Source of the DNA: Mytilus californianus
Lineage: Eukaryota
DNA: 64,000 bases
NCBI RefSeq assembly: GCF_021869535.1
Contig: NW_026262690.1
Location: 76,074,001-76,138,000 of the forward strand
Reading direction: 5' to 3'
Positions 563 through 25,020 of the stretch are shown one piece after another; position 1 is the stretch's first letter; each line of letters begins with the position of its first letter. The translations under genes and the position numbers were made by a program. The notes beneath the pieces were generated by a model, which saw only the letters and a list, made by a program, of their open reading frames with translations, ran no database searches and was not told where the DNA came from.

Positions 563-750
563 TACGAAAGCCCAGAAGGATCATGCGAGATCCGATATTC
601 GAAATTCGAGATTCAATATCCGAAGTTCGAAATTCGGAATTCGAGATTCGAGGTTCAATATCTTTATTTCGAGATTCGAGATTCGCAATTTTATATCCAG
701 CGTTACCAATCAGAAGAGAGTTTCTAAGATTTAAAATCTTTTAGACCAAT
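563..750 (+). repeat. Left TIR with 7-bp TTCGA(G/A)A repeat array and two CCAAT boxes
   Basis: First ~80 nt are nearly identical to the reverse complement of the right end at 21752. Shared block TATATCCAGCGTYACCAATCAGAAGA; CCAAT at 706-710 and 746-750. Confidence 0.9.
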
Positions 751-860
751 ATAATGAAACATCTTATCACAGGAAAAGATAAGAAAATGCAGCGACTGAA
801 TAGATATCTCGCGTGCTAGTATATCAAAACTTATCACACGAGACGGAAGCAACAAATGAA

Positions 861-963
861 ATGGCGGCGTTCACTGTTACGGATAAGTACAAAATAACAG
901 TTCGTGGTAAGCATGGAAAATATTCCTTCATCATTGAGAAAGATTTCACTTACGACGAACTAG
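861..963 (+). CDS. Predicted exon 1 of the kinase gene (MAAFTVTDKYKITVRGKHGKYSFIIEKDFTYDEL)
   Basis: AAATGGCGG start 111 bp after the inner CCAAT of the left TIR; GTAAGA donor; phase-compatible with 9415. Confidence 0.6.
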
Positions 964-1859
964 GTAAGATGTTTTTTTTTTTCATATACTTGGAATTGGG
1001 GGGAGGGTGCAAACTTTATATTGTGTTTACTCGTATTTTACTGTAACTGTATATGAACGAAGCCTAAAAATTGATAAAAATTGTTTATGTTTATTTGTAT
1101 TATACTTATTATTTACTATTGTTTGTTGAAATTCGTGTAATTTGTTTATGAAGCAAGCGATAGTTTTGAATATTAAGCAAACTTGGGCTAAAAAATGATT
1201 AACAGCGAGGCGGAGAGCTTTTATCTTATTTTATTTTCATTTTCATTCAAAATATTTTAGGGCAAGCAAGTCCGAAGATCATTACTTTAATCTAGCGTAA
1301 CTTTACAACTTTGAAAAATTTAAGATAATTTAGGTTGATATAGGGGTAAACCAGCATTTTTAGTTAACAATTTTTAAATGATTTGGTTTTGTTTATCTAT
1401 AAAATATACAAATATTTTATTTTCGAAGAAATTGTACTTTTTTTTCCATTTCCTAAAGAATAAATTTCACTCCGTTATATGAAATATCTTAAAAAAATAG
1501 TTTTATCCAAAATTCTACAGAAAAGCTTTAAAGGTAGGGAGATTATTACATAAGATAATTTTGTATACTTTGAAACTTGATTTTTTGTAAAATATTTTAA
1601 AACCATAATAGAAGAGTGACCTGGAATCCTGATAAAATATTTTCGATTTTGCAAGCTTTTATTCAAAAAGATTCGAACCGGAAATCCGCTTACGGTATTG
1701 AGAATAAGATTGTCCAAAAATTTTTGTGACCCTTAAATCGACTTTCGTCGATCTTCGATAATGAAGCAGCATTTCGTGGATCTCAGATGGTTCCGTATGA
1801 TTCCGTCCACAGATACTTGTTGACTGGATCGGATCATCACCCCTTTTTAAAGAATTATG

Positions 1860-2757
1860 ATCTTCAGTTGACGAATTATTATATCCCCGTTTTCTCAGGT
1901 GCGTTTTTATTTCTTCTCTTCTTATTTTGTAATGTTCTTCTGTTGAGCAAATTCGTTTAACACGAATACCGAGTCCATAAGGTATAGCATTTTTGACAGA
2001 ATTTGGATGGCTTGACGAAACATGTAGGTACTGGTGTCTATCTGTTGATTTTGTATAAAGATCTGTTTTTAGTTCTCCGTTTTCTATGTTTACAAATACA
2101 TCAAGAAATTATTTTTTTTCAGTTGAATAGCGCATTTCAGTTTGAATTCGCGGATGTAAATTATTGGACAATTCGTGAAATTTGTTTAATTAGTCTAAAC
2201 CGTGTTCCCATATTCCCCAGATGTCATCAACATATCTCCAATATGAATACGGCTGTAAATTACTATTTTGAAATAAATTTTCTTCCCATTGTCCGAGGTA
2301 TAGTACAGGCATAATTCATGCCTAGATGTGAACCAATAGCTGTTCCTTCGGTTTGTAGAAAGTGCTTTCCGTTAAAGCTAAAATTATTATTTTCAATGAT
2401 TAAGTCCATCATTTTAAGAACATCTTCAGTTGGGATTGATATATCAGATCGATTTTCTAATGCTGTTTTACATACTTATCGTGTTTCTTTTCGTGGTACA
2501 CTTGGATACAATTTAGTTACATCTAAACAAAACATTATTGCGTTCTCTGGTAATGGCTGTTGAATTTTATTTAATTTGTTTAAAAAATCTGTTGTGTCTT
2601 TAATATAGGTGGGCAAGTTTCGAACATTTTCCGAAAGCTCGTTTTCCACTATTTCTGCGATCTTTTCTGTCGGATGGTTCCGTCCATTAATAATTGTTCT
2701 TACCGGATGATATTCTTTTGTGCAATTTTAGATTTGCTTGTACTTTTCCAGGACATA
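1860..2757 (-). mobile_element. Penelope-like element reverse transcriptase fragment (degenerate)
   Basis: Minus strand reads HPVRTIING..LPTYIKDTTDFLNKL..LDVTKLYPSV..NNFSFNGKHFLQTEGTAIGSHLG..YWRYVDDIWGIW..NFLDV..LYTKSTDRHQYLH..HP..AIPYG, with stops and frameshifts. Confidence 0.88.
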
Positions 2758-2889
2758 TATCTTTCGGTAGTTGAAAACATATCTACTACCGAATGGAACA
2801 TGTCCTGGAAAAATACAAACAAATCATAAATTGCACAAAAAAAAATTCTTGATCTTTCAATCTTCATCAAATTTATCACAGAGTAAGTT

Positions 2890-3540
2890 TATATGAAAAT
2901 ACAGATACCATAAGAGGAATCGGTGGAAACTTTTTGTCTTCAATATGTACAGAGGGCTCAAAGTGTCAGTTTGATATTCAAAATATATTACAAAAGACTA
3001 CCGGAGGCCGCTTAAATGACAGTGAGACTTTCCTGATATATCAAAGTCAATTAAATGTAAGTTACTGTTAGGCTAGGTATAGATATCAAAACTGTAAAAA
3101 GATCTCTGAAACAATAATCATTTTATCACGGGATAGGGCGGGGTGCATTAGATACACCTTTCTGGTCTTTTAATCCGCAAGAAATTTAGCATAGATAAAT
3201 ATATTCTATTACCAATTAAGCTAGGGCCCACAAGGAGCATATAGAGAATACATAAATAAGGAAAAAGAACATTGATTAGCAAATGTAAATATAGATACAA
3301 ATAAGAGAAATTTGTGAAAACTTCTTGTCTTCATTATGTACGGAGGGCTCAAATGTATATTTGAAGATCTGTTTCTATACCTAGTCTAAGAGACCGCCAA
3401 ATTTTATTGACATTTAAACGGTATTCGGTAGTCTTATACTATATATTTTGAATATCAAAATGTCACTTTGAGCCCTGCGTAAACATCGAAGAAAAAAATT
3501 TCCCTAAACAAATTTTTCTTGACGTAATTTGTAATGTGTC
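2890..3540. mobile_element. MITE-like element with long imperfect inverted ends
   Basis: 2930-3005 (GTCTTCAATATGTACAGAGGGCTCAAAGTG..GACTACCG) is inverted at 3424-3500; an internal direct copy lies at ~3300-3355. Confidence 0.5.
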
Positions 3541-3572
3541 TATATGTTAGCGAACTATATGTATACTGTGTG

Positions 3573-5390
3573 TCAATACTTAATTAGTTTAATGATCTTG
3601 CATCTAGATTAATGTGACAGTTTATACGGTACATTAGTTGCACAGTAGAGTTGTAATAACATTGATAAGTTTATCAAAATATTTTAAGACCATAAAGCAA
3701 TGTTTAGTCTAAATTAAGAACATATGTTATTAGACGATCTTGTGAGAAATTTTATGTTGGTCAGTAGTTTTTTAGATGAGTTTTAAGTAACAAGTTCTAT
3801 GCACGAAAATTAATTGAAAGGATAAATGTTAATTGAGACTATAAAGAGTAAACTTTTTGCAAGGTTTCCGCAACTGTTCTCGACGAAAATCAATAAATTA
3901 CATGGTAATAATTTTTTTTATTGTTAGTTCAGATTGTTTTTTAAATAAGTTTTAGCAAAAGAAAAAGTTTATTTTCTTTAAAGTTCATGTTGCCTCCCCT
4001 AATTATTTTACTTATGTGATAATTTTTGGTGTGATTTTATAATTCGAGAAAAACGAATTTTGTTTAGCGGGGAGTGATACGGCGAGGTAAACTTCGTGTA
4101 CGTCAAGGAGTTGATGGTCAATACTTAATCAGTTTAATGATCTTTCATCTTGATTAATGTGACAGTTTATACGGTACATGAGTTGCACAGTAGATTTGCA
4201 ATAACATTGATAAGTTTATCAAAATATTTTAAGACCAGAAAGCAATGTTTAGTCTAAATTAAGAACAGATGTTAATAGACGATCTTGTGAGAAAATTTAT
4301 ATTGGTCAGTAGTTTTTTTTTTTAGATGAATTTTAAGTAACAAGTTGTTTGCACAAAATTAATTGAAAGGATAATTGTTGATTAAGATTTTAAAAGAATA
4401 AACTTTTTGCAACGATTCACGACGAAAATTAATAAATTACATAGCATATAATATTTTTTTATTTATTATTAGTTTAGATTATTTTTTAAATAAGTTTTAG
4501 GAAAAGAAAAAAGTTTATTTTCTTTAAAGTTCATATTGCCTCCCCTTATTATTTTACTTATGTAGTAATTTTTGGTGTGATTTTTACAGCGGATGACCGT
4601 GAGGGCATTCCGGTGTATTGTTGCCACAGACATTTCTATCCACGTGACTTGCGTTTTTGACTGATAACCGAACGTATCTCATAAAATTACGCGGATATTA
4701 TCGTATGCAAAATAACATTCCTTATTGCTTGTATATTGATTTCATCAATAAATATTCATGAAAATAATTTTTATGAACATAGATAAATGATATGAAAATG
4801 TTTTGTCGTGAGAAATATATATATCAATAACAAATCAAGAATACCGAAAATTTGTGTTAACGCATGCGGAAGAATATCTCAAGAACGTTTTGCGGGAAAA
4901 TATGAATGCCTACTCAAATAATCTATTAGAAAAATCGAATTATTACAGAAGAGTGTCCACCATGCACTTGGACTGCACTATTATTAGAATAGTAAAATAG
5001 AATGATATACAAATGGATGAAAATTATATATACATGTAACTGTTATACACAAATATTAATATAATATATAACAACAAACCAGAGTATGTTGATTTGTATC
5101 ACTACAATATAATAGTTATTACGGTGAGGTTGAATTCCCTGTCATTTATTCATCATCCACGCACGAACTTGTCTCGGAAAAAAATATATCTATGTACCTT
5201 AACCTCACTTTCAGGTATAGAGATGTGATTTTTTTTTCTGGGACAAGTGCTTGTGACCATCCACAAGAACTTGCGGTCATCCGATGTTCAGTACTTCAGT
5301 ACTTTGATAGCATTCGAGAGAAAAAGAATTTTGTTTAGCGGGGAGTGATATGGCGTGGACAACTACATCAAAGAGTTGATGGGCAATACT
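3573..5390. repeat. 545-bp tandem duplication; second unit interrupted by a ~0.72 kb insertion
   Basis: TCAATACTTAAT.. starts at 3573 and 4118. The unit-end motif TTTGTTTAGCGGGGAGTGATA occurs at ~4060 and ~5330; extra sequence fills ~4587-5312. Confidence 0.8.
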
Positions 5391-5789
5391 ATTACACATT
5401 ATAGCGTGTTCCCTATGCTAGCGGGTTAAATATGGATTAATCGATCCCGTATACATAGTTCTAAAAAATGACAAGTAACAAAGTACACAGAATAGAGCCC
5501 TGTTACAATAATATTATGAAGATTGAAAGATCAGGAATGTCGAGCCAACGACCTATGCCCTCTTACATGTACCTGAGTATATTTTTTATTTTGTATATAA
5601 AGTCAATCGAATTTATCGTTTGTTTTTGGCTTTCCATGCGTTTTTCAAATGTTACAATATCATCCTTTGTTTATGTATTATATTGAACTATTATCTTTAG
5701 AAGTACATCTGTGATTGCATTTTATTGATAAATCTATATAAATATATATATATATAAAACTTAAAGATAAAAATGCAATTTACATATTG

Positions 5790-7463
5790 TTTTTAGCTCA
5801 CCTGACCCAAAGGGTCAAGTGAGCTTTTCTCATCCCTTGGCGTCCGTCGTCCGTCGTCGTCGTTCGTCGTCGTCGTTAACTTTTACAAAAATCTTTTCCT
5901 CTGAAACCACTGGGCCAACATAAACCAAACTTGGCCTAAATCATCCTTAGGGTATCTAGTTTAAAAAATGCATTCGATGACCTAGAAATTTTTAGACGAA
6001 TCAGACAACCCGTTGTTGGGTTGCTGGTCCTAAATTTGTAATTTTAAGGAAATTTTGTAGTTTTTGGTTATTATCTTAAATATTATAATAGATAGCGATT
6101 AACTGTAAATAGCAAAAATGTTAAGCAAAATAAGATCTACAAATCAGTCAAATGACCAAAATTGTCAATTGACCCCTTAAGGAGTAATTGCCCTTTAAAG
6201 TCAATTTTTCACAATTTTTTGTAAATTTTTGTAATCTTTTACAAACATCTTCTCCTGAAATTACTGGGCCAAGTTAAACCTGACTTAACCTAAATCATCC
6301 TTAGGGTATCTATTTAAAAAAATATATCCGATGACCGCGCCCACCTACCAAGATGGCGGCCATGGCTAAAAATTGAACATAGAGGTAAAATGCAGTTTTA
6401 TGCTTATATCTCTGAAACTATAGCATTAGAGCAAATCTAACGGGTTTCAGATGTTCATCAGGTCAACATGACCAAAATTGTCAATTGACCCCTTAAGGAG
6501 TTATTGCCCTTTAAAGTCAATTTTTCACTATTTTTCTTGAATTTTTTTAATCTTTTTCACAAATCTTCTCCTTTAAATCTACTTGGCCAAATGGAATTAA
6601 ACTTAACCACAATTATTATAAGAGTATATATATCTTGATTGAAACATGTATCCGATGACCCTGCCCTCAGTACAAACAACATGGTCCCCATTGGAAAAAA
6701 TGGAACATAGGGGTTTAGTATATAGAAGTCTATGGGAAAAATGTAAAAAAACAATTTCAAATGGTCATAACTTGAAAACCAATTTAAATAATGATAAGGG
6801 GTCTTCTGTAACTAATGGGATGACTTGATTTTTTTCCAGTGGGTGCACTTTTTTCAGGGGGGTGCTAATAATTTCTCCTTGATATGATCCATTTCCAGAA
6901 TTATTCAATGTTACTTTTTCTATAAACCATTATTATATCTTTTCTTTCAGCATAATTATATTGGATGAATGCTCCTCAGACCCGGCGGGTTAGTCGGGGC
7001 CAGGGGAACCCCTGCCCAAATATTTTTTGAAGGGTGTTCCATAAAAACATTTAAAGGCATTTTCAGCATTATACAGGCCCTGGGTGATATAAATGTTGGA
7101 GCGGAGGAAAGGAAATTTTTTATTTTTCGTTAATTATCTTGAATATCATTATTGATTGATATATATTGTACACAGCAAAAATATCAAGAAAAGAAAGATC
7201 TACAAATAAGTTAACATGACCAGTTGGCAATTGACATCTTATTGGAGTTATTGTCCCTTAAAGTAATATCTGCAATTTATTGGTAATTTTTGTAACTCTT
7301 TTCAAAAATATTCTGCTTTTAATTTAACTACTGGGCCAAATTAAACCAAACTAGGCCTCAATCATTATTAGGGTATCTATATATTTTTAATCTTATTTTA
7401 CATGATTTCCAAAACCACAGTAGATACAGGTGAGCGACACAAGCTCTTGAGAGCCTCTAGTTT
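5790..7463 (+). mobile_element. Non-autonomous Helentron (HINE/DINE-like)
   Basis: 5' TTTTAGCTCACCTG subTIR plus short palindrome and a (CGT)n/CCGT microsatellite; internal repeats; 3' CAGGTGAGC subTIR, GCTCTTGAGAGC palindrome and TCTAGTTT end. Confidence 0.75.
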
Positions 7464-7464
7464 A

Positions 7465-8310
7465 TCTATATTGTGTCATAGATCAAACTTATTCGTTCAG
7501 TGTATATTTACTTGTTTTTATGAATATGTCTTTTTGATCGAGTTAAGCCATTCCAATTGATATTTTCTTTTATTATACTTCTGGTCAAAATGCCAGATTT
7601 TGATTGGTTAATACGAGGGAGACAATTTACTCTATCCCATGGCAAATACTCTATTACCCTTCACGGAGACGCTTGCTCAAGTGTGCATGCGCTTTAATAA
7701 ATATGGATGATTGTTATGTATAAGACGACATAGTTTATTACTTTGCATTTGAAATTTAAAGACAGAACATTCAGTATAATAAATTAAATAACACTTATCT
7801 GAGAGGGTGATAGAGCAGATTGTTACCCCTCGAAAAGACATTGTCAACCTTGGCTTCGCCTCAGTTGACAATGTTTTCTCGGGATAACAATCTGCTCTAT
7901 CACCCTCTCAGCTATGTGTTATTTATATAGTGTGTCTTTTTATGTTGTAATGTTACACCACTGTTTCAGGTTAGGGTGAAAGTTGGCGCCTGTTTAAACG
8001 TTTAAACCCGCTGCATTTTTATGCACCTGTCCTAAGTCAAGAGCCTGTTGTTCAGTGGTTGTCATGTGTTGATGTGGTTCATAAGTGTTCCTCGTTTCTC
8101 GTTTTTTATATAGATTAGACCGTTGGTTTTCCTGTTAGAATTGTTTTACACTAGTCATTTTTGGCCCTTTATAGCTTGCTGTTCGGTGTGAGCCAAGGCA
8201 CCGTGTTGAAGGCCGTACTTTCACCTATAATTGTTTACTTTTTACACATTATGACTTGGATGGATAGATGTCTCATTGGCACTCATACCACATCTTCTTA
8301 TTTATATATA
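7465..8310 (+). repeat. Interspersed repeat family (second copy on - at 61378-61775), interrupted by a palindromic element
   Basis: Ends CTCATTGGCACTCATACCACATCTTCTTATTTAT; homologous to the reverse complement of 61378-61775; a fragment also lies at ~15290-15405. Confidence 0.7.
7568..7927. mobile_element. Non-autonomous element ending in a ~140-bp hairpin (Crypton-type, inferred)
   Basis: Arms 7786-7848 and 7864-7924 pair around CTTGGCTTCGCCTCA; the element splits the host repeat at GATATTTT|ATAGTG. Confidence 0.6.
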
Positions 8311-9414
8311 CCAACAACATATAATTTTTTAAAGAAAAATCTGTGGATTTGAACTTTGAGATTTGGTGATTTTAAGACAAATTTTAAAACTTTTTTCGCC
8401 GATTTTATGTGCTTTCTATACAAATGTTCAACTATTTTGAAAGAATTCAATCAGTAATATTCCAGAAAATAAAAGAGATAAATGCATTATTTTTTTCGAT
8501 TTTCAGTTTAAGTGCAACGAGAATAAGCTGTATGCAAAATGTGAACACAATCTGTGACATAGTCCATTAACTTAACCATAATTGATTAATATAAACTATG
8601 TATCAAATGTGAGAGTTAAACGTAATTTTTCAATGTGCAAACCACAAGCTCCTTAATTGTATAAGTGATGCTTGATCGATCCATGATGTATATACATGAA
8701 AATTGCGAAGTGCGCGTGTATTTGCTTTCATCGGTATACATGGTAAATTCTTTTATCTTTTAAATGATTATTCTCTCAACGAAAAATTAAGGGTGATTTA
8801 GCCTCTACCAAATTAGATATTTAGAAAATCATTTGCCGAATCGTCGGCATTCTCTTTCCCTGATGACATTAGTAAACCTACGAGATGTTTCGAAAGTGCT
8901 GAAATTTTAGGTATAGCAAAACTTCGGATTCCCTCATAATCATGGTCGTAAAAAGGCACACGAATAACGTGATTGGCCATTGACGACCGACTTTGAGGAC
9001 CAGAGTTGACATTTTCGATTTTTGTCAACTTCATTTTCAAATATAGATTTTGAAGTTTTATATACAAAAATATTATTAAGTGTCACATCTCAATCGGCAA
9101 AGCCAGATCAGAAGAGATATAAACACAAAGCTGATGGAAACCGACTTTTTCTATGTCCACCATCACTTTGCGGCGGGGGACAAAAATAGGGCAGTAGTTG
9201 CAATAAAATATAACATATGTATGTCTAGCCGAAATTGCTTCCTGTTTAATGGTCCCTTTCTGCTGTTACATTTCTTCAACTTTTGTTTAAGGAATCTCAA
9301 ATATAATGTTCACTCCAGGTGGACACTGCGAATTTTCCATTAGCATTTTGTGTTTCAAAACAAACTAGTGAGGTGAGAGATTTTTTCTAGTTAAATATTT
9401 GGAATATCTTTCAG

Positions 9415-9545
9415 GAAACACTGTTGAAAGTGATAAAGAACAGCACATTAAGAACATGATAACGGCCATTAGAGAACAAAAGAAAAATCCTAAGAATGAT
9501 TCCAAAAAAGTAGGGAAAAAACGTTCAGTCGGAGAAGAGAATACG
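9415..9545 (+). CDS. Predicted exon 2 of the kinase gene (Lys-rich, NTVESDKEQHIKNMITAIREQKKNPKNDSKKVGKKRSVGEENT)
   Basis: AG/GT-bounded and stop-free in the frame that joins exon 1 to exon 3. Confidence 0.65.
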
Positions 9546-9597
9546 GTAGGTTGTATTTGGTAGTGAAATTATATTATCCATTCTGTTTGAAAACCTC

Positions 9598-9953
9598 GTG
9601 AGGAGGGGGGACTTCAATACTTTATTAATAGGGGTGCCGCTGGAGTTCTGTTACCCCACCCTTTTCCTATAATTTAGATTATATAAATGTATACCTTTTC
9701 ATATATTGCGTAGGTAAAAATGTAACCTTTTCCCCATATTAGCTGGGTTTCGTGTGGCGTGGTGGAAAAGTGGAATACCAAAGTGTCAAAAGAGCGAAAT
9801 TTGTGGATAAAAACACAGCCGGGATCACCAAGAAAGATGACAAACGAACATTATTGACCTTATCATATATTTCTGATAGTTTTCCCAAGCTAGAAAATGT
9901 GACCTATTCCAGCGGCACGTCTTATCACCTTGTATATAGGAAGTGACCCCCCC
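9598..9953. mobile_element. Possible MITE with G/C-run termini
   Basis: GGGGGACTTC at the left and GAAGTGACCCCCCC at the right are approximately inverted. Confidence 0.35.
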
Positions 9954-10289
9954 TTTTTTTCCTTCCGCTCCGGTTGGATACAAACGCTTTTATTTCTACA
10001 CATCTATGCGAATAAACAATTCGTATGCGGATATCTGTTAAATTAATTCACTCTTCAAAATGTGCAGTCTTACTATTCACATACACGCAATTAAAAAAGT
10101 AGCACATTTCGCTTCATAAAACAATGAACTTGGGTTCCAGAGTACGGACATTGGCTATATTCGTTAATATGAGGTATTAACAGATGTCATGGTGAAAAAC
10201 AACAATTAAAGCTCTGTTTCTTCGAACTAGACTCACTTACTTCTAGTACTAGTATGGTGTGTCAAGCACATCTAGGTACCGCATTTGCT

Positions 10290-11765
10290 TATTTTTAGCA
10301 AGTTATTGCCATTACTTGGCGTCCGTAGTCCTTAGTCATTGTCCGGGGCTAATATTTTTTTTCCGAAATAATATTATCTAGATCTGTAAACAATGCGGTC
10401 AATTGTATCCAATTTTACCTACATGTTCCTTAGGGTATATTGTTTGTAAATTATATTCGGGTTTTTGGTCCATAATAGAAATGGCCGATGGTACTAAACA
10501 GAATAGAATAGCATTATAGTCACTTTTTTTTTATCTATGATTGATGACCCCCAATCGAGGCCAAATATGACCTTCTCTTTTGTAGAAATAAACAAATGAT
10601 TAAAAATTTTAAAAAAAAATTCTCTGTTACCACTTGACAAATTTAAACCAAACTTGCTAGTAATGTTCCTTCGTTGGATGCTCCGCTATCATTTCCTATG
10701 GTCCTGTCGATTTTTGTCCCCCGGACATGAAAATACCGGGCGTCCGTGTGTCCGTCCGTCCGTCCGTCCGGTCTTGTTAGCGTTCTCACGGGTACAATTA
10801 TTGTCAGGTTTTGGTAAAACTTATACTATAGGTTAATATCAGCAATATCCCGGACAAATTCTAAAATGGTGGACGATTGAATTTTTTTAAAAGAGTTATC
10901 ATGTCCCTTGGAAATATTGAATTTATGGAAAAGGCCTCGTTAGCGCTCTCACAGGTACAATTCTTGCCAGAGTTTTATAAAACTTATACGATAGGTTACT
11001 ATCAAAAATATCTCGGACAAGTTCTAAAATGGTGGACGATCGACTTTTTAAATGAGTTATGCCCTTTGGAAATATTAAATTTATGGAAAATTGCCTCATT
11101 AGCGCTCTCACGGGTACAAATCTTGTCTGATTTTTATAAAACTTATACATTAGGTTAATATCAGCAATAGCTCGGACAAGTTCTAAAATGGTGGACGATT
11201 GACTCTTTTTAAATGAGTTATGCCCTTTGTAAATATTAGATAAGTGCAACGCGGGGGACATTGGAACTCTGTTCTTTTACTTTATTATGCCTATGACGAC
11301 CTCTATTTGGTTGACACATTTTCGACTTCTCGTTAGAAACAGCTGGACCAATATGAATCAAACTTGGCAGATATGTTCAATAGAATGTCCTCTATAACAG
11401 TTGAATCCTATGACTCTCCCATACATACAATACGGCTGTCTGGCCTATGATTGGTTCACACATTATCGGCATTTCATCAGAAATGACTGGGCTAATTTGA
11501 ACAAAAGTTGGTATTCATGTTCCTTTGATGGTTTTGATTGGATCAAATGACCCTTTGGATTTTTAGTATGGCCGCTTTGTGCTCTGATTGATTAACACTT
11601 GTATCAATTCTTTTTAGAAACTACAAAGCCAATTTCTACCAAACCATGTAGGTATGTTTCTTGCATAATGTTCTATCAAAATTGTGCCCAATTATCTGTT
11701 TTAATTTTCAAAATGCCTATATATATCAATGCGAACGATTCGGGCATCCGGAAGCCGTCAAGTTT
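10290..11765 (+). mobile_element. Old degenerate HINE containing a younger nested HINE
   Basis: 5' TTTTTAGC..TTGGCGTCCGT and 3' GAACGATTCGGGCATCCGGAAGCCGTCAAGTTT resemble the ends of 5790-7463. Confidence 0.5.
10711..11283 (+). mobile_element. HINE with three ~161-bp tandem units
   Basis: subTIRs TGTCCCCC (10715) and GGGGGACA (11253); (CCGT)n tract; units start near 10777, 10939 and 11098; 3' GAACTCTGTTC hairpin then T-run. Confidence 0.78.
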
Positions 11766-14700
11766 ACCCCTTTTTGTTTACCTAAATAAAGTTTCGTATG
11801 CGATATAAGCACTACAAAATTATATCAGTCAGTCCGCTTGCAGTTTTTCCTGACCATTTTGTTAAGGTTAGGACTTTGAGCCCAAACCATTTTTGTGTTG
11901 TCAGAACCATTCTCTCATGTATATCTATTTTCATTACTTTTTGCAGGATATGAACACACTGAAAAGAAAGCATGATGAACAGTATACTCGCAGTAGGAAT
12001 TCAAAATTACATATTGGTTGGCAACACTACAAGGCCGGACGATACAAGCAGGTTTTTAAAGCCGACGGTGGCAGTGTTCGACAACTACCAATATCAACGC
12101 TTGATTTAGAAATTGATGACGTTATTCTATTGGGAATAGACGTATTTTATCCTGATGGCAAATCTAAATATGGTCATTTGAAGGAAATGGAGATATACCT
12201 GGCTGGTCAGAAACTAACATTTGAAAGAGTGAACGAAACAAAACCAAATTTAGGCAACTATCTAAGATTCAATGGACTGCAGTTGTCAAAATGTACATTT
12301 TATCTGATGACAAAACTGAGAAAGGATCAATCGTTTATTTCAAAAAATGAACAAACAGACATTCCCCTACACGGTCAGTCAAGCAGCTGCGTATCCATTC
12401 AGTTAGACAATTTCATAACCCCGCAGCAGGATCTTGTATCGAATAAAACAGGAAGCCTAGAACAACAGCAAGCAATTTCTAACCAACCTCAAAGGTCTAT
12501 TCTTCTTCCTGTTTATGTATGTGGGACTGTCAAAGAAAGACAAGAAATTGTTATTAGATACTACAGAGAACGTCTGTCCAAGTATTCCGAGGAAACTTCC
12601 ATAATTTCATGCAGTTCCATTCGTCAATGTAAAGATATCACCTCTTTCGATGAACCTGTTGTTGTTGACGAAGTTTACAATCCTTGCGACAATGGACTTT
12701 CTATTTGCAGTATGCAAATTGGAGGGAAAGATTTCATAGATACAAAATTTGAAAGAATAGACGGAGTACTGAAGAAGACGACCCGATATCCCTCAGCCGG
12801 AATCAACATAGATGGTATAATCATTGACGAAGCTCTTGAAATTTGGGGATACGATGAAGACAACCTCTTGATAGGACTAGTAATTGGCACCACAGAGAAT
12901 GTTCTGTATACTTGGTTCAAGGATAACGTCATGATCAGCAGTGGATCCATGAACATAATCGTGGTTACACAACCTGGGATATATTCGTGCGAAGTCAGAT
13001 ATAAAACAATTGTCAAAAGCCGTGCAAATTATTGCTTTATCAGATATCGATGAAACAACCAGTGGCTCTATAACAAAAACAATATCTAATGGTTGCTCCC
13101 ATCAATCGCCTAGTATAACTACTACTTCACCAAACAGTGCTCTACAGTCGACAACTTCAAGTATAGAAAAAGGTTTCACTAAGGAAGATAAAATAGAAAA
13201 GAAGATTGCCACAAATCAACACCCTTTTGCTGTTCCAGAGGTTATTGTAGAAGACCTTAATATAGACTACTCATCCATTGTAGGAAGAGAAGCCTTCGGA
13301 ATCGTTTATAAAGGGAAGTGGACCGGATTGGAAGTAGCAGTCAAGGCCATTCCAATGAAGAAGAGAGCAAAAACTGCAATGCTGCGTACTGTGAAAAAAG
13401 AAATAAACATAAACTCAAAATTACGTCATCCGAACATTATTCAGTTCTTGGCTGTTGCTCGAGCCGACACTACAATTTATCTCGTGAGTTTATCATGGGA
13501 TGCAATATGGAGGATGCTATTTTCAGTGAAGAAACAAAGCTTGATAGGATATCAAAGCTAGGGACAAACCGCATATCATGAAACAAGTGGTCCAGGCTGT
13601 ATCATATATGCACTCTTTGGATCCAGTGGTTCTTCATCACGATATTAAACCGGGAAATATATTAATTAGAAAAGGTTGCTTAACAACAAAGGTTTGTGAC
13701 ATTGGAATAAGCAAATTGAAGTCTGTCGGTGCAGCCACGACAATAGCAGTAGGCAGTACTTGTGGATCCCCGGCTTACATGGCACCAGAATGTTTGCTCC
13801 AACAAGAAAATACATCCCCGTCTACAGACACATGGTCACTAGGTGTAACTTTTATCGAGTTTTTCAACGAAAAAGATGCATGGTCGGTTGATGATGAGTT
13901 AGATCCTGTTGCAGCCATCAAAGATAAGATAAAACAAGAAGTGTCACCAGTAGCTCAAGGTTCAGATATACCAGAAAATGTCATGGTTGTATTGAAAAAG
14001 TGTGTTCATTTTGACACTGCACTACGATCAACTGCCAATAAAATACTGCATGATTTGTCGTAGACATGGCAGATGGAGGATAAGAAAAAAATTACAATGT
14101 GTACTAAATCTGCTTGATTTTGATTTGATTTTTCGTTAATGACCAACTAGTGTCTGACCTAACAACAATTCGCATCTTAGTATTTGGCATACATATTGAC
14201 CGTTTCTTTAAGTGCAATAATAACCGTAGCTACCTTGGACAGACTTAAAAAAAATATTTGAATTTATTATAGTAAGAAAATATGTGCATGTCTTGTATGC
14301 CATGTGTAAAACATATTACTCGTGTCTTGTATGCCATGTGTAAAACATATTACTATAAGTAAAGATATATGTAGTCTTGAGTATTTTGTCTTGCGTGAAC
14401 CCACATTAACTAGAGTGTCAATGGGCCATTCCGAATTCTTTTATGGATTTCGGATGTCCTCATAGTTGTGTTTTGTTGTTGTTAATATACCATTTGGAAT
14501 GAAACTAGGAAAGCATAATTTTTTATTAATTACATAAAAATACAGTGTAACCCCGCATACTTAACGCGCATCAGGTTATGCAGGGATTGGCATTAATTGT
14601 CGAAAATAGTATATTAGCTCAGACGATTCTGTTTCATACTCGGTTTTAAGTACTTACAAGTGATATTATTACTTAAAAATTAGATTATTTAAAATGAAGC

Positions 14701-14996
14701 GTAATTTAAGCTCCGTATCTTTTGTAAATCTGTTTTATACTTCCTTGAAATTACGTGTTGCCTGAGGCAGCACACATTACATTTTTACCATCGTTGGTCT
14801 ATTCACAATGGAGAGTTATACCATCTTCTGTTGCCAGTCATTTGTGTTTTGTTAACAATTTGCAACAAAATTCTTTCTTAAAACACCAGTCCAATAAAGC
14901 TGATTTGTACATGTAGAAAAATCCCTTTGTACAAAATGTTCAAATTAGACAAATATAGCTTGCAACCACTCAGCCTATGTCGTCTATAATTGTAGT

Positions 14997-15245
14997 ACCG
15001 CCTATGTGGCGTAATTGGTAGCGTGCTCGCATGAATTGGGGTTCGATCTCTGGTCGGTTCAAACCAAAGACTTTATTTAAATTGGTACTTGCTGCTAACA
15101 CACAGACTAATGGAAAAATACCAAGGACTGGTAAGCTCTGAGTCAGAATAATTTATCCGGGTGGAATGACATGTCTAACTGCGGACAGTTACTCAAGTGA
15201 GCTAGCACTATAAAAATTCAGCTCAGCGTGTTTGTCTAGTATAAA
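14997..15245 (+). mobile_element. Degenerate tRNA-derived CORE-type SINE
   Basis: A-box-like GTGGCGTAATTGGTAGC and B-box-like GGGTTCGATCTC; CORE-like CAAAGACT..AAATTGGTACTTGCTGCT; tail GTGAGCTAGCACTATAAAAAT. Confidence 0.6.
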
Positions 15246-16910
15246 TATGGCTGTTATTGTCTCGTTTGAACTAATTTATAGTTGTCTTTTCTGGGTTTTT
15301 TAAAACTTGCATTGTGGCATGGGTTTTGCTCATCGTTGTAGGCCGGACGGTAACCTATAGTTGATAACTTCGAACGTCATTTGGTCTCGGGTCGAGGGTT
15401 GGCAATATAGTCCTACTACATGTATTCAGTTAATGTGGAATACCCGAAGCACAAACAAATTAACATAGCATCTGGACAGTGATATTTAGTTCAACGTCAG
15501 GACACGGTGACAGCTGTTTGACTGTCATGTACTCATCATAACCAACCTATAGAACAAATATTGTTATCTTGCCATTCAAAGAAATCGAGGAACATATCTT
15601 ATCACAAAACATTGACGTATTCAAGGATAGATAACATCTGTCGGACCGATATGTACTCCATATAACCAAATAATTTCTTAATCTTCAAGTTGCTGAAATA
15701 AAACCTGATACAATTAAAAAAAAAATAACATACACTACAATTGAGGTTTAAGGTCCAAGTGTCACCTGTCAGACTGACATCTACTTTCAAAATCTAACCA
15801 TTATTCTTAATATTGTTGTGCTACTATTCATAGTTACTAAAAACACAACATCTAAAACATCACTAGTTTGTGTAATTAGGTTTAGGTCTGTTATCAATTG
15901 TTTTACAAAAAAAAACCTACGCATTAAATAACGCAAAGCTGATTAAATTGCAAAACCTTAATGTGGTCACTGGACCGCAAAAATGAGGTCAAGGTCAGGT
16001 CAGGTGACATATGACTGACTGATAAGTACAAGTCATACGCTACCAGTGTACCAAAAGTGGTTTACCAAGGTCTTTAACTAACTAAGATATAAAAGCAAAA
16101 TGTAAATGCTAACCCGGTAACCGAAAACCCATGCCTGAATCTCGACTCCTGTGAGCTTGGTCTGTCGTTCGTTTTTGAATTTTTCATACTGATTAAAAAT
16201 AAAATTATTCCTACAGCTACTGTACCCATTCTCTTTTGATGTTACAGTGAAATTCACTAGCTCTTCCTTTGCGTGTATTAAAAAAATAATAATTATAGAG
16301 TAAAAGATATTAACTTCTATTTATGGTTCCTATATTAACTGTTCTAAGTGCTGGTCATCTAACATTGATCATCTACATGTTACATAAAAATGTTCTATGC
16401 AAATATTTACCAGCTGAGATCATTCAAATGCTTTAGTATCAGAACTATACATCAACTTGACCGTCCAAACATGCAGCGTTCTATGGTTCATGTCTTGCAT
16501 TTCTATTTTTAAAATAAATATCTTATATTACCTTCACCTAGATGTTTCGCAAGAATGGCTCTTCTTTAAGTTTTACTTCAGAATCAAAATTTAAGGACCA
16601 TGGATTAACATGTAATGATATAGATATGAAGGGTTATGCGATATATCTTGTTTCTAATTACTTTATATTACTTTATATAACTTATATGAGCAAATAATAT
16701 ATCTATGAACATATAATGTGCCTCCCTTCCGTTTGAGAAATCTTCATCCGCCACTTCGATTGTTAATCAAAAGACTACCTTTCATAACATTATTTAAGAT
16801 TTCGGTGCCGATCGAAATTCAACATGGCTGTCATCGCAGATCATTTTACATTGAATCTCATGGAGCATGTTATCATTAATAGTTCAACCACTTGTCATGA
16901 TATTTGTACA

Positions 16911-17910
16911 ATTAAAGAACCTTTGTGAGTACGCTCCCATACCCCACGCCCCCACATTGTCACTGGGCAAACAAAATCTCACTAGATTTCCAAGTTAAAA
17001 GACTCAACATTCCTACTAAAGTTAAATGATAAAAATTTCTTGTGAATATGCACATCTACATATTATGTTCCCATTATCTACAAAGTTTATAAAAAACTGT
17101 TAATTAGTTTCAGAGGAGTTGCAATGACAAACTGTTGCAGTAGAATAATAAGGCCAAAATTCTAAGTTCAAATTGGCTTAACTCCTAGAAAAAAATGAAT
17201 CATAATTTCCTGTCGATATGCACGTCTACATAATATGTCCTTACTGTCTACATAGTTTCGTGAAATTCTGTTTTGTAGTTTTAGAGGAGTTTCGATGACA
17301 AGAACAAGATTTACGGACTGTAGTATATTGAGGCCAATAAGTTCAAAGGGGCATAACTCATAGAAAAAATAAATAATCATAATTTCCTGTCGATATTCAT
17401 ATCTACATAGTATGTCTTTATTATCTACAAAGTTTCACGAAATTCTGTTGTGTATTTTCAGAGGAGTTTCGATGACAAACTGTTGAAGTAGTATATTGAG
17501 GCCAATAAGTGCAAAGGGGCATAACTCCTAGAAAAAAATTGAATCATAATTTCCTGTCGATGTGAACGTCTATACATAGTATATCCTTATTATCTACAAA
17601 GTTTCATGAAATTCTGTTGTGTGGTTTCAGAGGAGTTGCGATGATAAGAACAGGACTGACGGACTGTAGTATATTGAGGCCAATAAGTTCAAAGGGGCAT
17701 AACTCCTAGAAAAAAATTGAATCATAATTTCCTTTCGATATGCACATCTACGTAGTATGTCCTTATTATCTACAAAGTTTCATGAAACTATGTTGTCTAG
17801 TTTCAGAGAAGTTTCGATGACAAGATCAGGACAGGAACAGGACGGACGGACAGACAGACGGACGGGTCAAAATCATAAAACCCGACGCAAAAAATGCGTG
17901 GGGGTATAAT
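16911..17910 (-). mobile_element. HINE with ~167-178-bp satellite-like tandem array
   Basis: subTIRs ATACCCCACG (16939) and CGTGGGGGTAT (17897); (GACG/GACA)n tract at ~17840; repeat units at ~17180, 17356, 17523 and 17701. Confidence 0.75.
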
Positions 17911-18770
17911 TGATCATAGATACTATTGTGTATAAATTTTGTGATCAGAATGATCAGAATTTCAATATTGTATCACATAACACTGATGTTGGTATGTATT
18001 AGATACACATTGACGGCGTTAGCACGAATGGGTGTATCTAATTTACACCAAGATATTACTGTCAATGCAGAATGATAGTTTTCAATAATTTATATGGGGT
18101 CTTTCAGTGATTTGACCATACGTTATTGAAAAGCATGATGAATGCAGGGTATCCAATTTCGTTTAACAACATCTTGTTGTTAATCATATAATTATCATAA
18201 GGTGAACAACTCGGGCATATGCGAGGCTAAAGTTTGATATTCATAAGGTTTGCGCATTGAACTGTTTCTTCGTTTTCTATTTGATTAACTTTATATGTAA
18301 ATTGGTTGTTGCCAAACTGACGTTTATCCAGCATATAATAATTTTCTGATTAATAATAATTTTTTTGTGAATAGATACAGTTAATTTAATGGATGTCAAT
18401 GTAATTTGTCTTAAGGTACTTTAAATGATTAAGTATGAATTAAAGGATATGTGTGATATACGCCAATGAGATAACAACCCAGCGACACAAATAATCATAA
18501 TTTAGAGATCTGATAAGTGTTCATTTGCACGAGGAAATTTTTTAATTGGATAGGGAAGGAGTTTTAATTACAAATGTAACCTATCAGAATGAACGGATAA
18601 GGGTCACGATATGTGCAGTGCAAAATCGAAACAATTGCCATGCAATAGCTAATCATGGTTTGAATACAAATTTTGATGAAAAACATGTTCCGAGTATAGC
18701 GGAAAAGCATAACATGTAATTGGTTAACTATGAAAAATAACAAAATAACAAAATATCACAAGCAACTACG

Positions 18771-19874
18771 CTACATGTTAAGAACGATGTATTCATTGTA
18801 AAGGCTTAACCGAAATATCAATTGACCATAAAGATCTGAAGCTTCGTTGGCATCTGAAGGTCTGTCGTGTTTCGGCAAGATAAGGTTTACAAGTGAAATT
18901 TTTCTTCTGAGCAACCATGGATAGGTCGACTTTCTCCGTATGCCTGTTGACAATATAAAATATCATTTTGGTCGCAATTCACAATGTAATCGCGGGTACC
19001 ACATGAATCGGGTACAAAAAACAAAATGTCCGGCTTTCCTCCTGGACTCTCGTTATTCTTTTTCACTTGCATTGTATATTTGATTCCATTGAATTACTAC
19101 TTGATTAAGTTCTTTTTGAAGAACGTCCATAAAACAGTACCTTATACATTCGACATGCAATGGATCTGCATCATTGAATAAGTTGCTTTGGCGTAAATCT
19201 TTAAAAAAATTGATCCACCAATCGGCATTTTGTCGACGTAATATACTCCACCAGGCTTAGATTCTTTGGTTAGAAGTACTTTTCCCGTACAAGAAGCCAT
19301 ATCTTACAATCTCATTTTTACTCAGAGCATGAAAAAGAACTTGTATTCCTCTATCACTGTGTTTTCTGTACCTAAATCGCACCTGCACCTCCGGGGACAG
19401 CCTCCTAATTGTTCAACAGTATCCAAAAAATACCGCGCAATTATTTGTGGATTGTTATTACTTGGACCGACCTCAAGCCACATAATTCGTCTTGAGAACC
19501 CATAAATTGCACCATGTATTGGAAACCCAAAAGGCTTGAGTTTGTCGTAACCGTCAATATGTCACACAAAGTTAGGTTCAGGTGTCGTATATCGACGTCT
19601 TATCAACCAATTGTCCACTGTTTTCTATTATCTTGTAGATCGCACCAATAATGCCAGGGAGTGGAAGATTTACTTTGCGGCGTTTTTATTCAAGACTTCT
19701 CAAAATACGTTTGATTTGCGAAATACTTATAGATATTTTATGTACTGCCATCAGCACTTGAGAAATTTCCTTGTTTGTGTATCCTTGGGCAAAATATCTA
19801 CTTATCAATTCATTTCTTGGCATGTTATTGTTCCGGAGAAGGGCTGGTGTGTAAACTGGCAAAACCATTGTCAT
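18771..19874 (-). pseudogene. IS3/integrase-core-type DDE transposase, decayed (IS3EU-like)
   Basis: N-terminal HTH-like ELISRYFAQGYTNKEISQVLMAVHKISISISQIKRILR. Core: RRRY..PNFV*HIDGYDKLKPFGFPIHGAIYGFSRRIMWL..SNNNP..GGCP..RCDLGTEN..GKSTSNQRI*AWW..WWINFFKDL..ELNQ..WN, then PGGKPDILFFVP. Several stops, frameshifts and an apparent internal deletion near 19606. Confidence 0.87.
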
Positions 19875-21585
19875 GAAAAGGGAAAAAATAACTTTGAAGA
19901 AAATAAAGATCGATTAAGGTCGGTTATTATCAGATTTTGCATGAAAGTGGGACAAACAATTAAACATATAATGACTAACAAAATTTGCATATTACAGGAC
20001 AATTTGCATGATTGTACTTTTTTAGTCATAAAAAGAGTTCATTAATCTCACTTTAGAACGAGTTATCATTGAATCCTTCGATTTAAACAAATTTATTACA
20101 GTTATTATCCAGACAAGGGACTATTCTCAGTGGAAAATAACCCAATGATTATATTGCATGTTTCGAACCACTTACAGATACAGCGTCGGTTTCTTCTTGG
20201 TCATAGGATTTATAAATCAAAAGAATGCACGAAAAATTACCAAAAGGGGAGTTAACTCCAAAAAATAAAATTTTTATAATTTTCAGGACACATTTCCTTC
20301 AAAAAGATGACCAACACATGATGTCGTTCTTGTTATTTCGATCTGTAAGCAGTAAGGGATTTCAAATACCTTATTAAACTCATAGGTTTTAATATCACGA
20401 ATCACTATTATAATGAGAACTACCGGATTTTTATAAACATCAGTACTTCAATAATCCAGGCAAGACCGAGTGGGCAGTAGTACAGTACGTAGGTACTTTG
20501 AATACTTAAGATAGTAAAAACCGACTGCCTCAAAAGAATACAATGTTATTATAATTATTCTATGGTCATTCAGTATAATCATAAACCCACTAGTAATATT
20601 AAATAATATTTATATGAATTTTTGGGTTGTTTTCTGCTCTGTAGTCGGATTGTTGCCTCTTTGATACATTCCCGTTTCCATTCTCTAGTCTACATGAAAT
20701 AGAAATTAGATTAAAACGCATTTCTCGCATTCTTTCGATAAGACATGACATACTGGTGTATTATATGTAAATTGGTGAAATATGTTAGATAATGGTTTAT
20801 TAAAAATACCTGTAAAAAGGTACGTATACCCTAGACTTGCTACAATTCCCTTTCTTTTATTTCTTTCTTACAAATTTATTTAGTATATGTCTACTGAAAA
20901 CTGCCAGTATACTGATTGCCCTTGGAGAAAGGTTCCTATGCAGGTGTTAAATGCAATATACTGTAAATCTCTTTATTATCGCAATAAAATTGTTAAAGGG
21001 GTAAAATTGAAGAAGAAGAAAAAGAAAATTACGATGGGACATGTAGCAAGTCTACCTATACCCTATAAATACCTGAGACAAAAGCTAAATGCGTACCGAT
21101 TTTCGAAAACGTGATTTCCCAAAAATGTTTCAAGGCGCGCCTTTGGGATTCTATGGCTTCCGAAAGGGGCACTGGTCAAAATAAATTTGTATGGTATGAC
21201 ACCATTTACACAATCACCCTTCCAATCCACCTGTGAAGCCGCCCCTTCAACTGAAACTATATGTACTGCATGTTCCACACCTACTGCTTGCTATGTTTAC
21301 AACATGATCAGCATACAAGTGTCAATCGTTTGAACGACCCCTATCTCTTTTGTGTGTAGCCATGTACATGCATGTAAGGCTTCAATCGTGAAGTGGGGCA
21401 AATACACCTTAATTAGATTCGTGCAGTTGAACTAAACTTCAAACAAACAGTGCAATATACAAATAAAAACATACCTTCTTATTTATTTCCTGCACGACAA
21501 CCAATTTACTACACTATGCAGTTAAAAGCACACGTGTATTTATAAACCCGCTAATTTCAATATCATTTATGTAAAAACATAGTTC

Positions 21586-21752
21586 ATTGGTCTAAAATAA
21601 TTCACAAGTTAGAAGCATTCTTCTGATTGGTGACGCTGGATATAGAATATCGAATATCGAATCTCGAATTTCGAATTTCGAATTTCGAACTTCAGATATT
21701 GAATCTCGACTTTCGAATATCGGATCTCGCATGATCCTTCTGGGCTATCGTA
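21586..21752 (-). repeat. Right TIR with 7-bp repeat array and two CCAAT boxes
   Basis: Reverse complement of 563-750 with fewer 7-bp units; ATTGG at 21586-21590 and 21626-21630. Confidence 0.9.
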
Positions 21753-22698: not shown

Positions 22699-23123
22699 TT
22701 ATTTCTCATTGTGGACAAGCATTCCAAGAAATGACGAACGAGGGTAGCTAGAGTAACTAAAAATCACATTGTCGGTCCCGTAACTTGTTCTAATAAATGC
22801 ATGTTCATCTTTCTGCATTCTACACAACGCCGTCATGGAAGCTGAGTGGTGAAAACCTTCTGTATCAGTCTCACCTGCATTTGATATAGCTCGATTCTGA
22901 ACCACAAGCTCAGTGAGTATGTATTTACCAGTATTACTTGTTACTGTCCAGGAGAATAGATACACCCCTTTCCTTGGTGCAACAAACACTCCATCGTTGA
23001 GATTGTAGTGACCTCCAGTGTTTAAAATAACCGAATTAAAGACTACAGTTGACTTTGTGTTTAAATTTATAGTACTTCCGGAATTTATCAGGGGATAGAA
23101 CATGACCGGTTCAAGATCGGTTC
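22699..23123 (-). CDS. C1q globular-domain exon of a C1q-domain-containing (C1qDC) protein, intact
   Basis: VVFNSVILNTGGHYNLNDGVFVAPRKGVYLFSWT...SASMTALCRM..SSFLGMLV; acceptor TTTTCCAG|GA (phase 1); stop at 22699. Confidence 0.9.
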
Positions 23124-24035: not shown

Positions 24036-24935
24036 TGATTTGACCTTTTTTTACCCCTGTGTTCTTTTTGTTTGACGGACGGCAATTATGTTTTGACAGC
24101 GGGGACATCCAACATGATTTTAAAAGCTAAACACGAAGAAGGATAATTGTAATTCAGGTGAATTTAAAAATCATGTGGTAAAGGAAATTTTAATTTCTTT
24201 AAAACGCATTATCAGCAATAGCACGGTTAAATCATTGAATAATGATATGTTTACCATTGACTATGCGATAGTAGTAGACAAGGTTGAAGATTGACTACAT
24301 AATTCATAAAAAAATGCAAATCATAAAAAAGTTTTTTTTTATTTGTTTGAGAGTTTTTGTTAGTGTATTTTTTTATTTTTTTTTTGAGGGAGCAGTTTCT
24401 TCGCAGTTTCTTCACGAAATATAAAGGGGGTCATATTGGGGAGAAGATCTGATCCCAAAAGCATTGATCGTCCAAAAAAGGGGGTTTTCCAACCCCCGGA
24501 ATCCACCATACCCCCTCCCCCTCTGGATCCGCCACTGCATACTATCTATATGTTTCAAATTTATTATAGCTTAAGTTTTACTGTGAAATTGAAAAATGTT
24601 TTCAAGACATATAAAGCTTCCACTGCAATTTAATTATAGCCTGCTTTAGGTCAATTTATTTTGTCATCTTACCATGTAAAGAATTACATGTATAGTAAAC
24701 CACCGCTTTATATCAATAAACATATTACTTAGACCAGCAGCTACCATCATTTCATTCTGGAATCAAGGGCCTTTTGATATCAAATATTTCACATTGATAC
24801 TAGTGAGTAGATTAACAAAACTTCGTTAATGGGCTCCGTTTTACAAACACCTGTGAATCAAGTAATCAGCCAAAATAAACTATCAATAGACCAATTAAAA
24901 GATTACTCGAGTTGTAAATATGTGCTAAATTGGTA

Positions 24936-25020
24936 GTCTATGAAAAGATATATACTATGAAATTAAGAGCTCGGGGCAAGCCCCTCCTCTAAATTTCATA
25001 GTATATACCTTTTCATAGAC
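24936..25020. repeat. 85-bp hairpin with GGGGCAAGCCCC centre
   Basis: GTCTATGAAAAGATATATACTATGAAATT pairs with AATTTCATAGTATATACCTTTTCATAGAC. Confidence 0.8.

Follow-up and report, generated by a model that had tools for sequence, protein, structure and literature searches.

Cut-and-paste transposons are usually thought to need a transposase alone, and one of their superfamilies, IS3EU, is poorly described and known mostly through Repbase entries. A 64,000-nucleotide stretch of the Mytilus californianus genome (NCBI RefSeq assembly GCF_021869535.1, contig NW_026262690.1, positions 76,074,001 to 76,138,000 of the forward strand; hereafter the window, numbered from its first letter) raises the question of whether a protein kinase can belong to such an element, as its positions 563–21752 hold a kinase gene and a transposase gene that read towards each other between two terminal inverted repeats (TIRs). 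We find that this span is very probably a decayed copy of a two-gene IS3EU cut-and-paste transposon with the kinase as its partner gene (Table 1). The kinase is an ancestral part of this transposase clade and not a recent capture, because the same tips and the same gene orientation recur in elements whose transposases are 45–56% identical, including an intact 6.7-kb element, L013.

Ends, genes and decay of the window copy

The arms at 563–661 and 21654–21752 are 93% complementary, with weaker pairing out to ~190 nt, and behind the tip both carry tandem subrepeats of 7/21 bp of the CGAGATT/CGAAATT type. Shuffled sequences are expected to contain no copy of the 39-nt tip, TACGA(A/T)AGCCCAGAAGGATCATGCGAGATCCGATATTCG; the window holds exactly two, one per strand, and its letters include no runs of N. 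Between the arms the kinase gene (+) and the transposase gene (−) both read inward, which agrees with the initial annotation of the locus, made from its letters alone, that had described TIRs of ~165–190 bp enclosing two inward genes.

The minus-strand gene had been read as an IS3/integrase-core DDE transposase, and Pfam bears this out: stop-free pieces at 18774–19913 (−) match PF24764 (rva_4, ‘integrase core domain’) with E 9.5e-12. An intact relative of 401 amino acids from an unlabelled Logan assembly, P0013, is 92% identical to the transposase open reading frame (ORF) of the Mytilus coruscus copy L001, which served as the query, and matches rva_4 with E 7.5e-34 and HTH_21 weakly. It maps onto window positions 19868–18792, crossing at least seven stops as well as frameshifts, and the window gene has additionally suffered a 127-bp deletion at 19609 that is not found in L001, L002, L006 or L011, the full or right-hand copies examined. 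More than 1000 homologues of the transposase were found, with a full length of ~400–420 amino acids, and the residues D147, D206 and E246 are invariant across the relatives.

Exons of the kinase gene were placed by mapping database proteins back onto the window, with single exons, stop-free pieces and database proteins as queries, and all three that remain have canonical splice sites. A fuller model, P0133 from M. coruscus (792 amino acids), has one exon more than the window; this extra exon sits in the ~1.2-kb stretch missing at ~1706, from which it follows that four exons make up the intact gene and that exon 2 is gone from the window. The three-exon structure first proposed therefore holds for this copy and not for its intact relatives. 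The last exon, which matches Pfam Pkinase at 13271–14052, contains three frameshifts (near 13000, 13480 and 13546), so that an ORF of 386 amino acids and two Pkinase-matching ORFs are spread over three frames, and the catalytic motifs are still legible despite these breaks. With an exon lost, three frameshifts in the kinase and a deletion plus stops in the transposase, the window copy is dead for both functions, as had been recognized.

CCAAT motifs (ACCAATCAGAAG and GACCAATGAA) stand at the inner TIR edges (window 700–752 and 21563–21640), are kept in all Mytilus copies and may be promoters for the two inward-reading genes. Similar motifs are present at 9527–9560 and 19070–19100 of L008, a distant element described below. 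We dropped CCAAT boxes as a general promoter feature of these TIRs, since the arms of L013 are without them.

Table 1. Features of the window copy (window positions), of related Mytilus copies and of distant relatives.
Feature	Position or source	Strand	Remarks
Left TIR	563..752	+	Tip TACGAAAGCCCAGAAGG, then 7-bp CGAGATT/CGAAATT subrepeats (586–690); two CCAAT motifs at inner edge
Kinase exon 1	861..963	+	ATG at 861, GT donor at 964; start of small N-terminal domain
Exon-2 deletion site	1700..1712		~1.2 kb gone at ~1706; exon present in L002 (~11847–12015) and L011 (11977–12123)
Kinase internal exon (3 of 4 in intact relatives)	9415..9545	+	AG acceptor 9413–9414, GT donor 9546; lysine-rich linker
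Tandem array, 159 bp	10777..11238		Inside second intron; recurs in other Mytilus copies
Kinase last exon	11947..14063	+	Domain A ~11977–12345, tandem immunoglobulin (Ig)-like domain B ~12499–13071, Ser/Thr kinase ~13271–14052
Tandem array, 177/346 bp	17023..17825		Between the two genes; recurs in other Mytilus copies
IS3EU DDE transposase pseudogene, intronless	18789..19868	−	Pfam PF24764 rva_4 and weak HTH_21
Right TIR	21563..21752	−	Same tip as left (TACGATAGCCCAGAAGG); subrepeat array 21640–21729
L002	M. coruscus		Collinear with 563–21752 throughout, 86–95% identity per block; homology stops at both tips; perfect 6-bp target-site duplication (TSD) GATATG
L001	M. coruscus		Homology stops exactly at right tip (21752)
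L006	M. californianus		Homology stops exactly at right tip (21752)
L011	M. coruscus		Homology stops exactly at right tip (21752)
L010	M. coruscus		Homology starts exactly at left tip (563)
L009	M. coruscus		Degraded copy
L008	ENA contig		9.8 kb; same tip (TACGAAAGCCCAGAAGGCTCAT), 14-bp subrepeats; transposase 56% identical to the Mytilus one
L013	ENA contig		6.7 kb; TACGAAAGCCGAGG tips, 7-bp subrepeats; 705-amino-acid kinase and 391-amino-acid transposase, both intact; TSD CTTTAC
IS3EU-like transposases with HECT-type partner genes	L060 6952–11059; L064 5097–10370	−; −	Also ~20 other metagenome loci

The unit that moved

The 386-amino-acid ORF has multi-copy homologues in M. coruscus, M. californianus, M. 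galloprovincialis and M. edulis, and six Mytilus loci (L001, L002, L006, L009, L010 and L011) were compared with the window. They are collinear with it at 86–96% identity over the parts retained, five of them at about 90–95%, L002 being the sole complete one, and flanks differ among all copies. The long introns and both tandem arrays recur in every Mytilus copy that covers those regions, so the arrays belong to the family as a whole and did not insert privately into single copies; the remainder of the span is intron and intergenic DNA. Since introns and arrays recur while flanks differ and the tips are the ends of homology, the ~20-kb form was itself the unit that moved. The tip, TACGAAAGCC, is conserved, with TACGA...TCGTA termini in the window, L001, L002, L006, L008, L010, L011 and L013. 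Gene sets of Mytilus annotate the copies as host genes, under the names ‘protein kinase domain-containing protein’ and ‘integrase core domain-containing protein’.

One of these loci has an unusual layout, in which a partial copy (L011 1–9849, equivalent to window 1355–8884) abuts a second copy (L011 9844–33939) whose left TIR is missing its outer 140 nt. The arrangement is a local rearrangement or a nested duplication of the element.

Classification and described relatives

IS3EU elements are defined by TA..TA termini, a TSD that is usually 6 bp long, a DDD/E transposase without an HHCC motif and the presence of two proteins (PMC10045372, PMC8232023). The Mytilus family has an IS3/integrase-type DDE core, TA..TA (TAY..RTA) termini with TIRs and two genes, and a 6-bp TSD flanks L002 (GATATG/GATATG) and L013 (CTTTAC/CTTTAC), the sequences beside the window copy (TTGGCC/ATTCCT) and L008 (GTTCTA/GAATGG) being different. 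Compared by eye on the core motifs printed in the supplement of PMC10045372, P0013 is nearly the same as the Crassostrea gigas Repbase entry IS3EU-4_CGi_2p (VWHIDGYDKLKP, HGAIDGFSRRI.WLEVGPSNNNP, CRCDLGTEN and STSNQRIEAWWSILRRQ), and the motifs also match other IS3EU entries there. Judged on these sequence features, membership of IS3EU appears well supported. Both the Mytilus family and IS3EU-4_CGi come from bivalves, the latter known here from its printed transposase core alone (PMC10045372), and the label ‘2p’ on its transposase implies that the entry has another protein.

A parallel for the kinase has been described in fungi. TET+ IS3EU families of Pucciniales and Tuber carry a transposase and, in opposite orientation, an alpha-kinase gene (PMC12730594), and they share with the Mytilus family the 6-bp TSD, TAY...RTA termini, long TIRs and a kinase-type gene opposite the transposase. 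They differ in that the Mytilus kinase is a Pfam Pkinase accompanied by ubiquitin-like and Ig-like domains, no TET/JBP gene is present and the host is an animal; only Pkinase/PK_Tyr_Ser-Thr was reported by Pfam, with no match to Alpha_kinase. The likeness is thus one of role and position, not of homology. GingerRoot (Selaginella and animals; PMC6839031; since merged as IS3EU/GingerRoot) has the same transposase lineage, 6-bp TSD and TA..TA termini, but was described from a plant in a paper that names no kinase or second gene (PMC6839031). The four-gene element Styx/REP9 of Zymoseptoria, which derives from IS3EU (PMC8232023, PMC10853768), likewise combines an IS3EU-type transposase, TIRs and a 6-bp TSD with extra conserved genes, but these encode DUF3716 and others, the host is a fungus and no kinase is reported inside.

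The initial annotation had proposed a kinase-carrying IS3EU lineage and was not aware of a described case. The lineage is upheld by the recurrence of the gene pair in L002, L008, L013 and L035 and by the core shared with IS3EU-4_CGi_2p, and the comparison with Repbase entries that it suggested came out close; the claim of novelty was too strong, given the fungal alpha-kinase (PMC12730594). Kinases in IS3EU elements thus have a precedent, and Repbase already lists an oyster relative whose ‘2p’ label implies a second protein. A 2012 meeting report described DNA transposons harbouring conserved host-acquired proteins. The searchable literature yielded nothing that connects IS3EU to a canonical protein kinase or to HECT/G2E3, IS3EU second genes going unmentioned in the GingerRoot and bivalve transposable-element papers, and no account of an animal IS3EU partner kinase with ubiquitin-like and Ig-like domains, of its co-divergence with the transposase, or of a domain A common to HECT-type elements.

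Anatomy of the second protein

The intact second-gene protein, of ~790 amino acids, comprises a small N-terminal domain, a basic linker, a ubiquitin-like domain that we call A, two Ig-like domains and a tyrosine kinase-like (TKL) Ser/Thr kinase. The first two exons encode the small domain, for which a Pfam TDP-43_N match in P0133:1–135 falls below the cut-off, and a sequence search of the PDB with the N-terminal domains gave no match. The lysine-rich linker from the internal exon is possibly a nuclear localization signal. In an AlphaFold2 model of P0133:1–523, built from a 23-sequence alignment, the confident regions are domain A (~140–255) and domain B (~310–500), and the modelled domain B looks like two Ig-like sandwiches. 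Domain A modelled alone, from 26 sequences that include HECT-type ones, reaches a predicted local distance difference test score (pLDDT) of 91 and has a beta-grasp topology.

The kinase domain has its nearest solved structures among TKL kinases (CTR1, TAK1, B-Raf and IRAK4). Intact kinase ORFs are found in P0009, P0134 and P0144; the Pkinase match of P0009 has a Pfam E of 1.5e-51, and P0134, from an unlabelled Logan assembly, is 52–58% identical to the window’s kinase gene. The full catalytic motif set (G-loop GxGxxG, VAIK Lys, alphaC Glu, HxDxKPxN, D[LM]G and APE) is present in 23 of the 24 family members compared, which share 28–55% identity, and such retention at this divergence argues for selection on catalysis. 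By its motifs, complete in relatives, the second gene is predicted to encode a canonical Ser/Thr kinase of TKL-like type.

Distant elements with the same gene pair

Convergent kinase and transposase genes occur in the window, L002, L008, L011 and L013. In L008 the convergent gene starts with an ORF of 524 amino acids, two blocks of which are 42% and 33% identical to the Mytilus protein, and continues with a Pkinase ORF. The compact L013, whose transposase is 45.6% identical to the Mytilus one and whose 6-bp TSD is perfect, has room for two genes and nothing more. Scanning of Joint Genome Institute (JGI) metagenome contigs with the transposase alignment returned 80 loci, among them L035, in which an Ig-kinase gene lies convergent and just downstream of the transposase. 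The multidomain protein, with domain A, Ig-like part and kinase, is thus found in L008, L013 and L035 at 27–50% protein identity. Two sets of loci are uninformative: a Saccostrea transposase (L007, 69% identical) has no TACGAAAG tip on a contig that stops 1.3 kb past the gene, and L003, L004 and L005, which carry the intact kinase P0009, show no transposase on contigs that stop 3.3 kb past the kinase.

Around L008, a 13-nt motif, GACATTCAGAGTT, is found inverted 10 and 28 nt beyond the two tips (9400–9428 and 19200–19245); tried as a TSD it gave none. L008 may have inserted into a palindromic target or into another inverted repeat.

A sister group carries a different enzyme. Eight other metagenome loci, all with sufficient sequence downstream, have a convergent gene that opens with domain A (hmmsearch E 1e-12 to 1e-22) and is missing the Ig-kinase part. 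HECT-domain ORFs (Pfam E 1e-10 and 3e-7) separate domain A from the transposase in L060 and L064; they are on the same strand as domain A and take the place of the Ig-kinase part, so that domain A occurs in kinase-type and HECT-type second genes alike. Of the 80 metagenome loci, 21 have HECT homologues downstream of the transposase, as no kinase-type element does, and tblastn with the L060 and L064 HECT ORFs found no match in the window, L002, L008 or L013. The transposases of these relatives (L060, L064, L019, L022 and others) are 37–51% identical and, unlike those paired with the kinase, fall outside the kinase-linked clade.

That clade emerges from a maximum-likelihood transposase tree with 52 rows, made by quick search and rooted at the midpoint for display only, in which one branch, with a Shimodaira–Hasegawa-like approximate likelihood-ratio test (SH-aLRT) value of 98, has the four kinase-linked rows on one side and all 13 HECT-linked rows on the other; a single change of label suffices. 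Within the kinase group the topology is ((Mytilus, Saccostrea L007, L008),(L013, L035)). Kinase–transposase co-phylogeny, which the initial annotation had put forward, is found at low resolution: when the kinase and N-terminal parts are compared pairwise, their similarities yield ((Mytilus, L008),(L013, L035)), the same quartet as the transposase.

Weighing the evidence

Several observations weigh against a two-gene transposon with an ancestral kinase. The window copy, flanked by TTGGCC to its left and ATTCCT to its right, is without a TSD, as is L008 (GTTCTA against GAATGG), in both cases also after shifting the tip positions, which leaves a 6-bp TSD at two of the four complete copies, L002 and L013; the suggestion that paired TIRs would repeatedly enclose both genes held, with the 6-bp TSD at these two. 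Named Mytilus assemblies yielded no copy in which both genes are intact. The labels on the transposase tree cover 17 of its 52 rows, the other 35 being on contigs too short to label, and the tree has no outgroup root. Structure searches were weak as well: the N-terminal model of 523 amino acids returned only generic two-Ig-domain receptor matches in Foldseek (E > 1e-3), and the best matches of domain A (ubiquitin-like, RA, PB1 and SATB1-ULD) all had E > 1e-3, for which reason we assign domain A to a fold class only and not by homology. Finally, a spliced homologue, P0173 (L012 10001–16242 (+); GCA_003918875.1, QXJH01000159.1), lacks DxG and reads HRSIHPGS in its degenerate catalytic motifs, and the 10 kb of downstream flank fetched contain no transposase, so kinase homologues can exist apart from the element. 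P0173 is either a decayed copy or a domesticated pseudokinase. The inverted repeats on either side of it are those of a common miniature inverted-repeat transposable element (MITE); L012 also holds a 264-bp foldback at 24754–25017, with ends TACGGAAGC...GCTTCCGTA, which looks like an IS3EU-style MITE.

Could the arrangement be a host kinase gene caught between two independent TIR fragments or MITEs, with the transposase pseudogene paired to it by coincidence? The missing TSD at the window copy and a span that is mostly non-coding and repeat-rich would fit, but the entire interior matches copies elsewhere in collinear order, with homology ending at the TIR tips, TSDs are present at L002 and L013, and gene pair and tip are found in distant families as well; such a coincidence is almost certainly not the explanation. 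Segmental duplication might likewise have multiplied the locus without transposition, as the partial copy abutting another in L011 and the two complete copies of four without a TSD could suggest. Against this, flanks all differ, in six loci the breakpoints fall on the exact base of a tip, 563 or 21752, the perfect 6-bp TSDs of L002 and L013 differ in sequence, and the tip is conserved across families with 45–56% identical transposases, which makes duplication extremely improbable. The kinase could also be a host gene recently transduplicated into one Mytilus family, in the manner of Pack-MULE cargo and functionless for the element: DNA transposons do capture host genes, and this kinase domain is similar to ordinary TKL kinases, CTR1, TAK1 and B-Raf among them. 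Yet the same multidomain protein stands beside the transposase in L008, L013 and L035 at 27–50% identity with motifs and ORFs intact, and the kinase-linked transposases form one clade, so that we hold recent capture to be very improbable.

What the kinase does for the transposon is a separate matter. In the mechanism that we favour for discussion, the transposase would bind the subrepeat arrays, cut at the TA tips and yield 6-bp TSDs, and the second protein would act as an accessory factor whose ubiquitin-like and Ig-like domains dock to the transposase or to a host protein. The kinase would then phosphorylate the docked partner and so license or regulate transposition or blunt host control, an analogous role perhaps being played by the HECT ligase in sister lineages and by the alpha-kinase in fungal IS3EU elements. 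That the kinase is a direct transposition cofactor seems to us a little short of an even chance. A serious competitor, to which we would give a somewhat lower probability, is that it is no cofactor and either manipulates the host (silencing, DNA-damage or innate-immune signalling) or is a neutral or selfish passenger kept by linkage. The nearest solved kinases are indeed signalling kinases (TAK1, IRAK4 and Raf), fungal transposons carry TET/JBP enzymes thought to counter silencing (PMC12730594), and a swap of kinase and HECT on one adaptor domain suits a host-directed effector; strict co-inheritance with the transposase over deep divergence speaks against the neutral passenger. More speculative, and in our view unlikely as a whole, is a fully modular second gene in which domain A is an adaptor and the enzyme is exchanged (kinase in bivalve-type, HECT in cnidarian-type and alpha-kinase in fungal elements), modification of a common target being obligatory for IS3EU transposition or for escape from the host.

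Other features of the window

Some 950 bp beyond the right end of the element, a C1q-domain ORF at 22699–23103 (−; Pfam C1q, E 3.6e-18) resembles an exon from one of the C1q-domain genes, which form an expanded family in mussels. Further along lie an ORF of 241 amino acids at 37351–38076 (−) that matches QRICH1 and DUF3504 (E 7e-12 and 2e-13), a combination that we take to be typical of Crypton-derived or transposable-element-associated genes, fragments of a non-LTR (long terminal repeat) retrotransposon at 41381–43894 (+; RVT_1, E 1e-8) and a fragment of a Tc1/mariner-type DDE_3 transposase at 47084–47419 (−; E 6e-8). Two pairs of direct repeats, 48304–48603/49992–50291 (98% identity, 1.7 kb apart) and 54345–54564/58259–58478 (90%, 3.9 kb apart), are possibly LTRs or duplicated elements.

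Implications

A form of ~20 kb with 8-kb introns and internal satellites has evidently transposed, which is large for a cut-and-paste element. A whole IS3EU clade keeps a multidomain kinase, with its catalytic motifs intact, beside the transposase over deep divergence, and its sister clades keep a HECT domain on the same adaptor; kinase and HECT on a common adaptor point to a protein-modification step encoded by the transposon. If the modular reading is true, the second gene would be a transposon-encoded signalling enzyme and not passive cargo. For genome annotation, multi-copy kinase families in marine invertebrates may be inflated by the cargo of IS3EU elements, possibly along with HECT or G2E3-like families, and HECT-type elements may explain some of the multi-copy HECT or ‘G2E3-like’ annotations in these animals.

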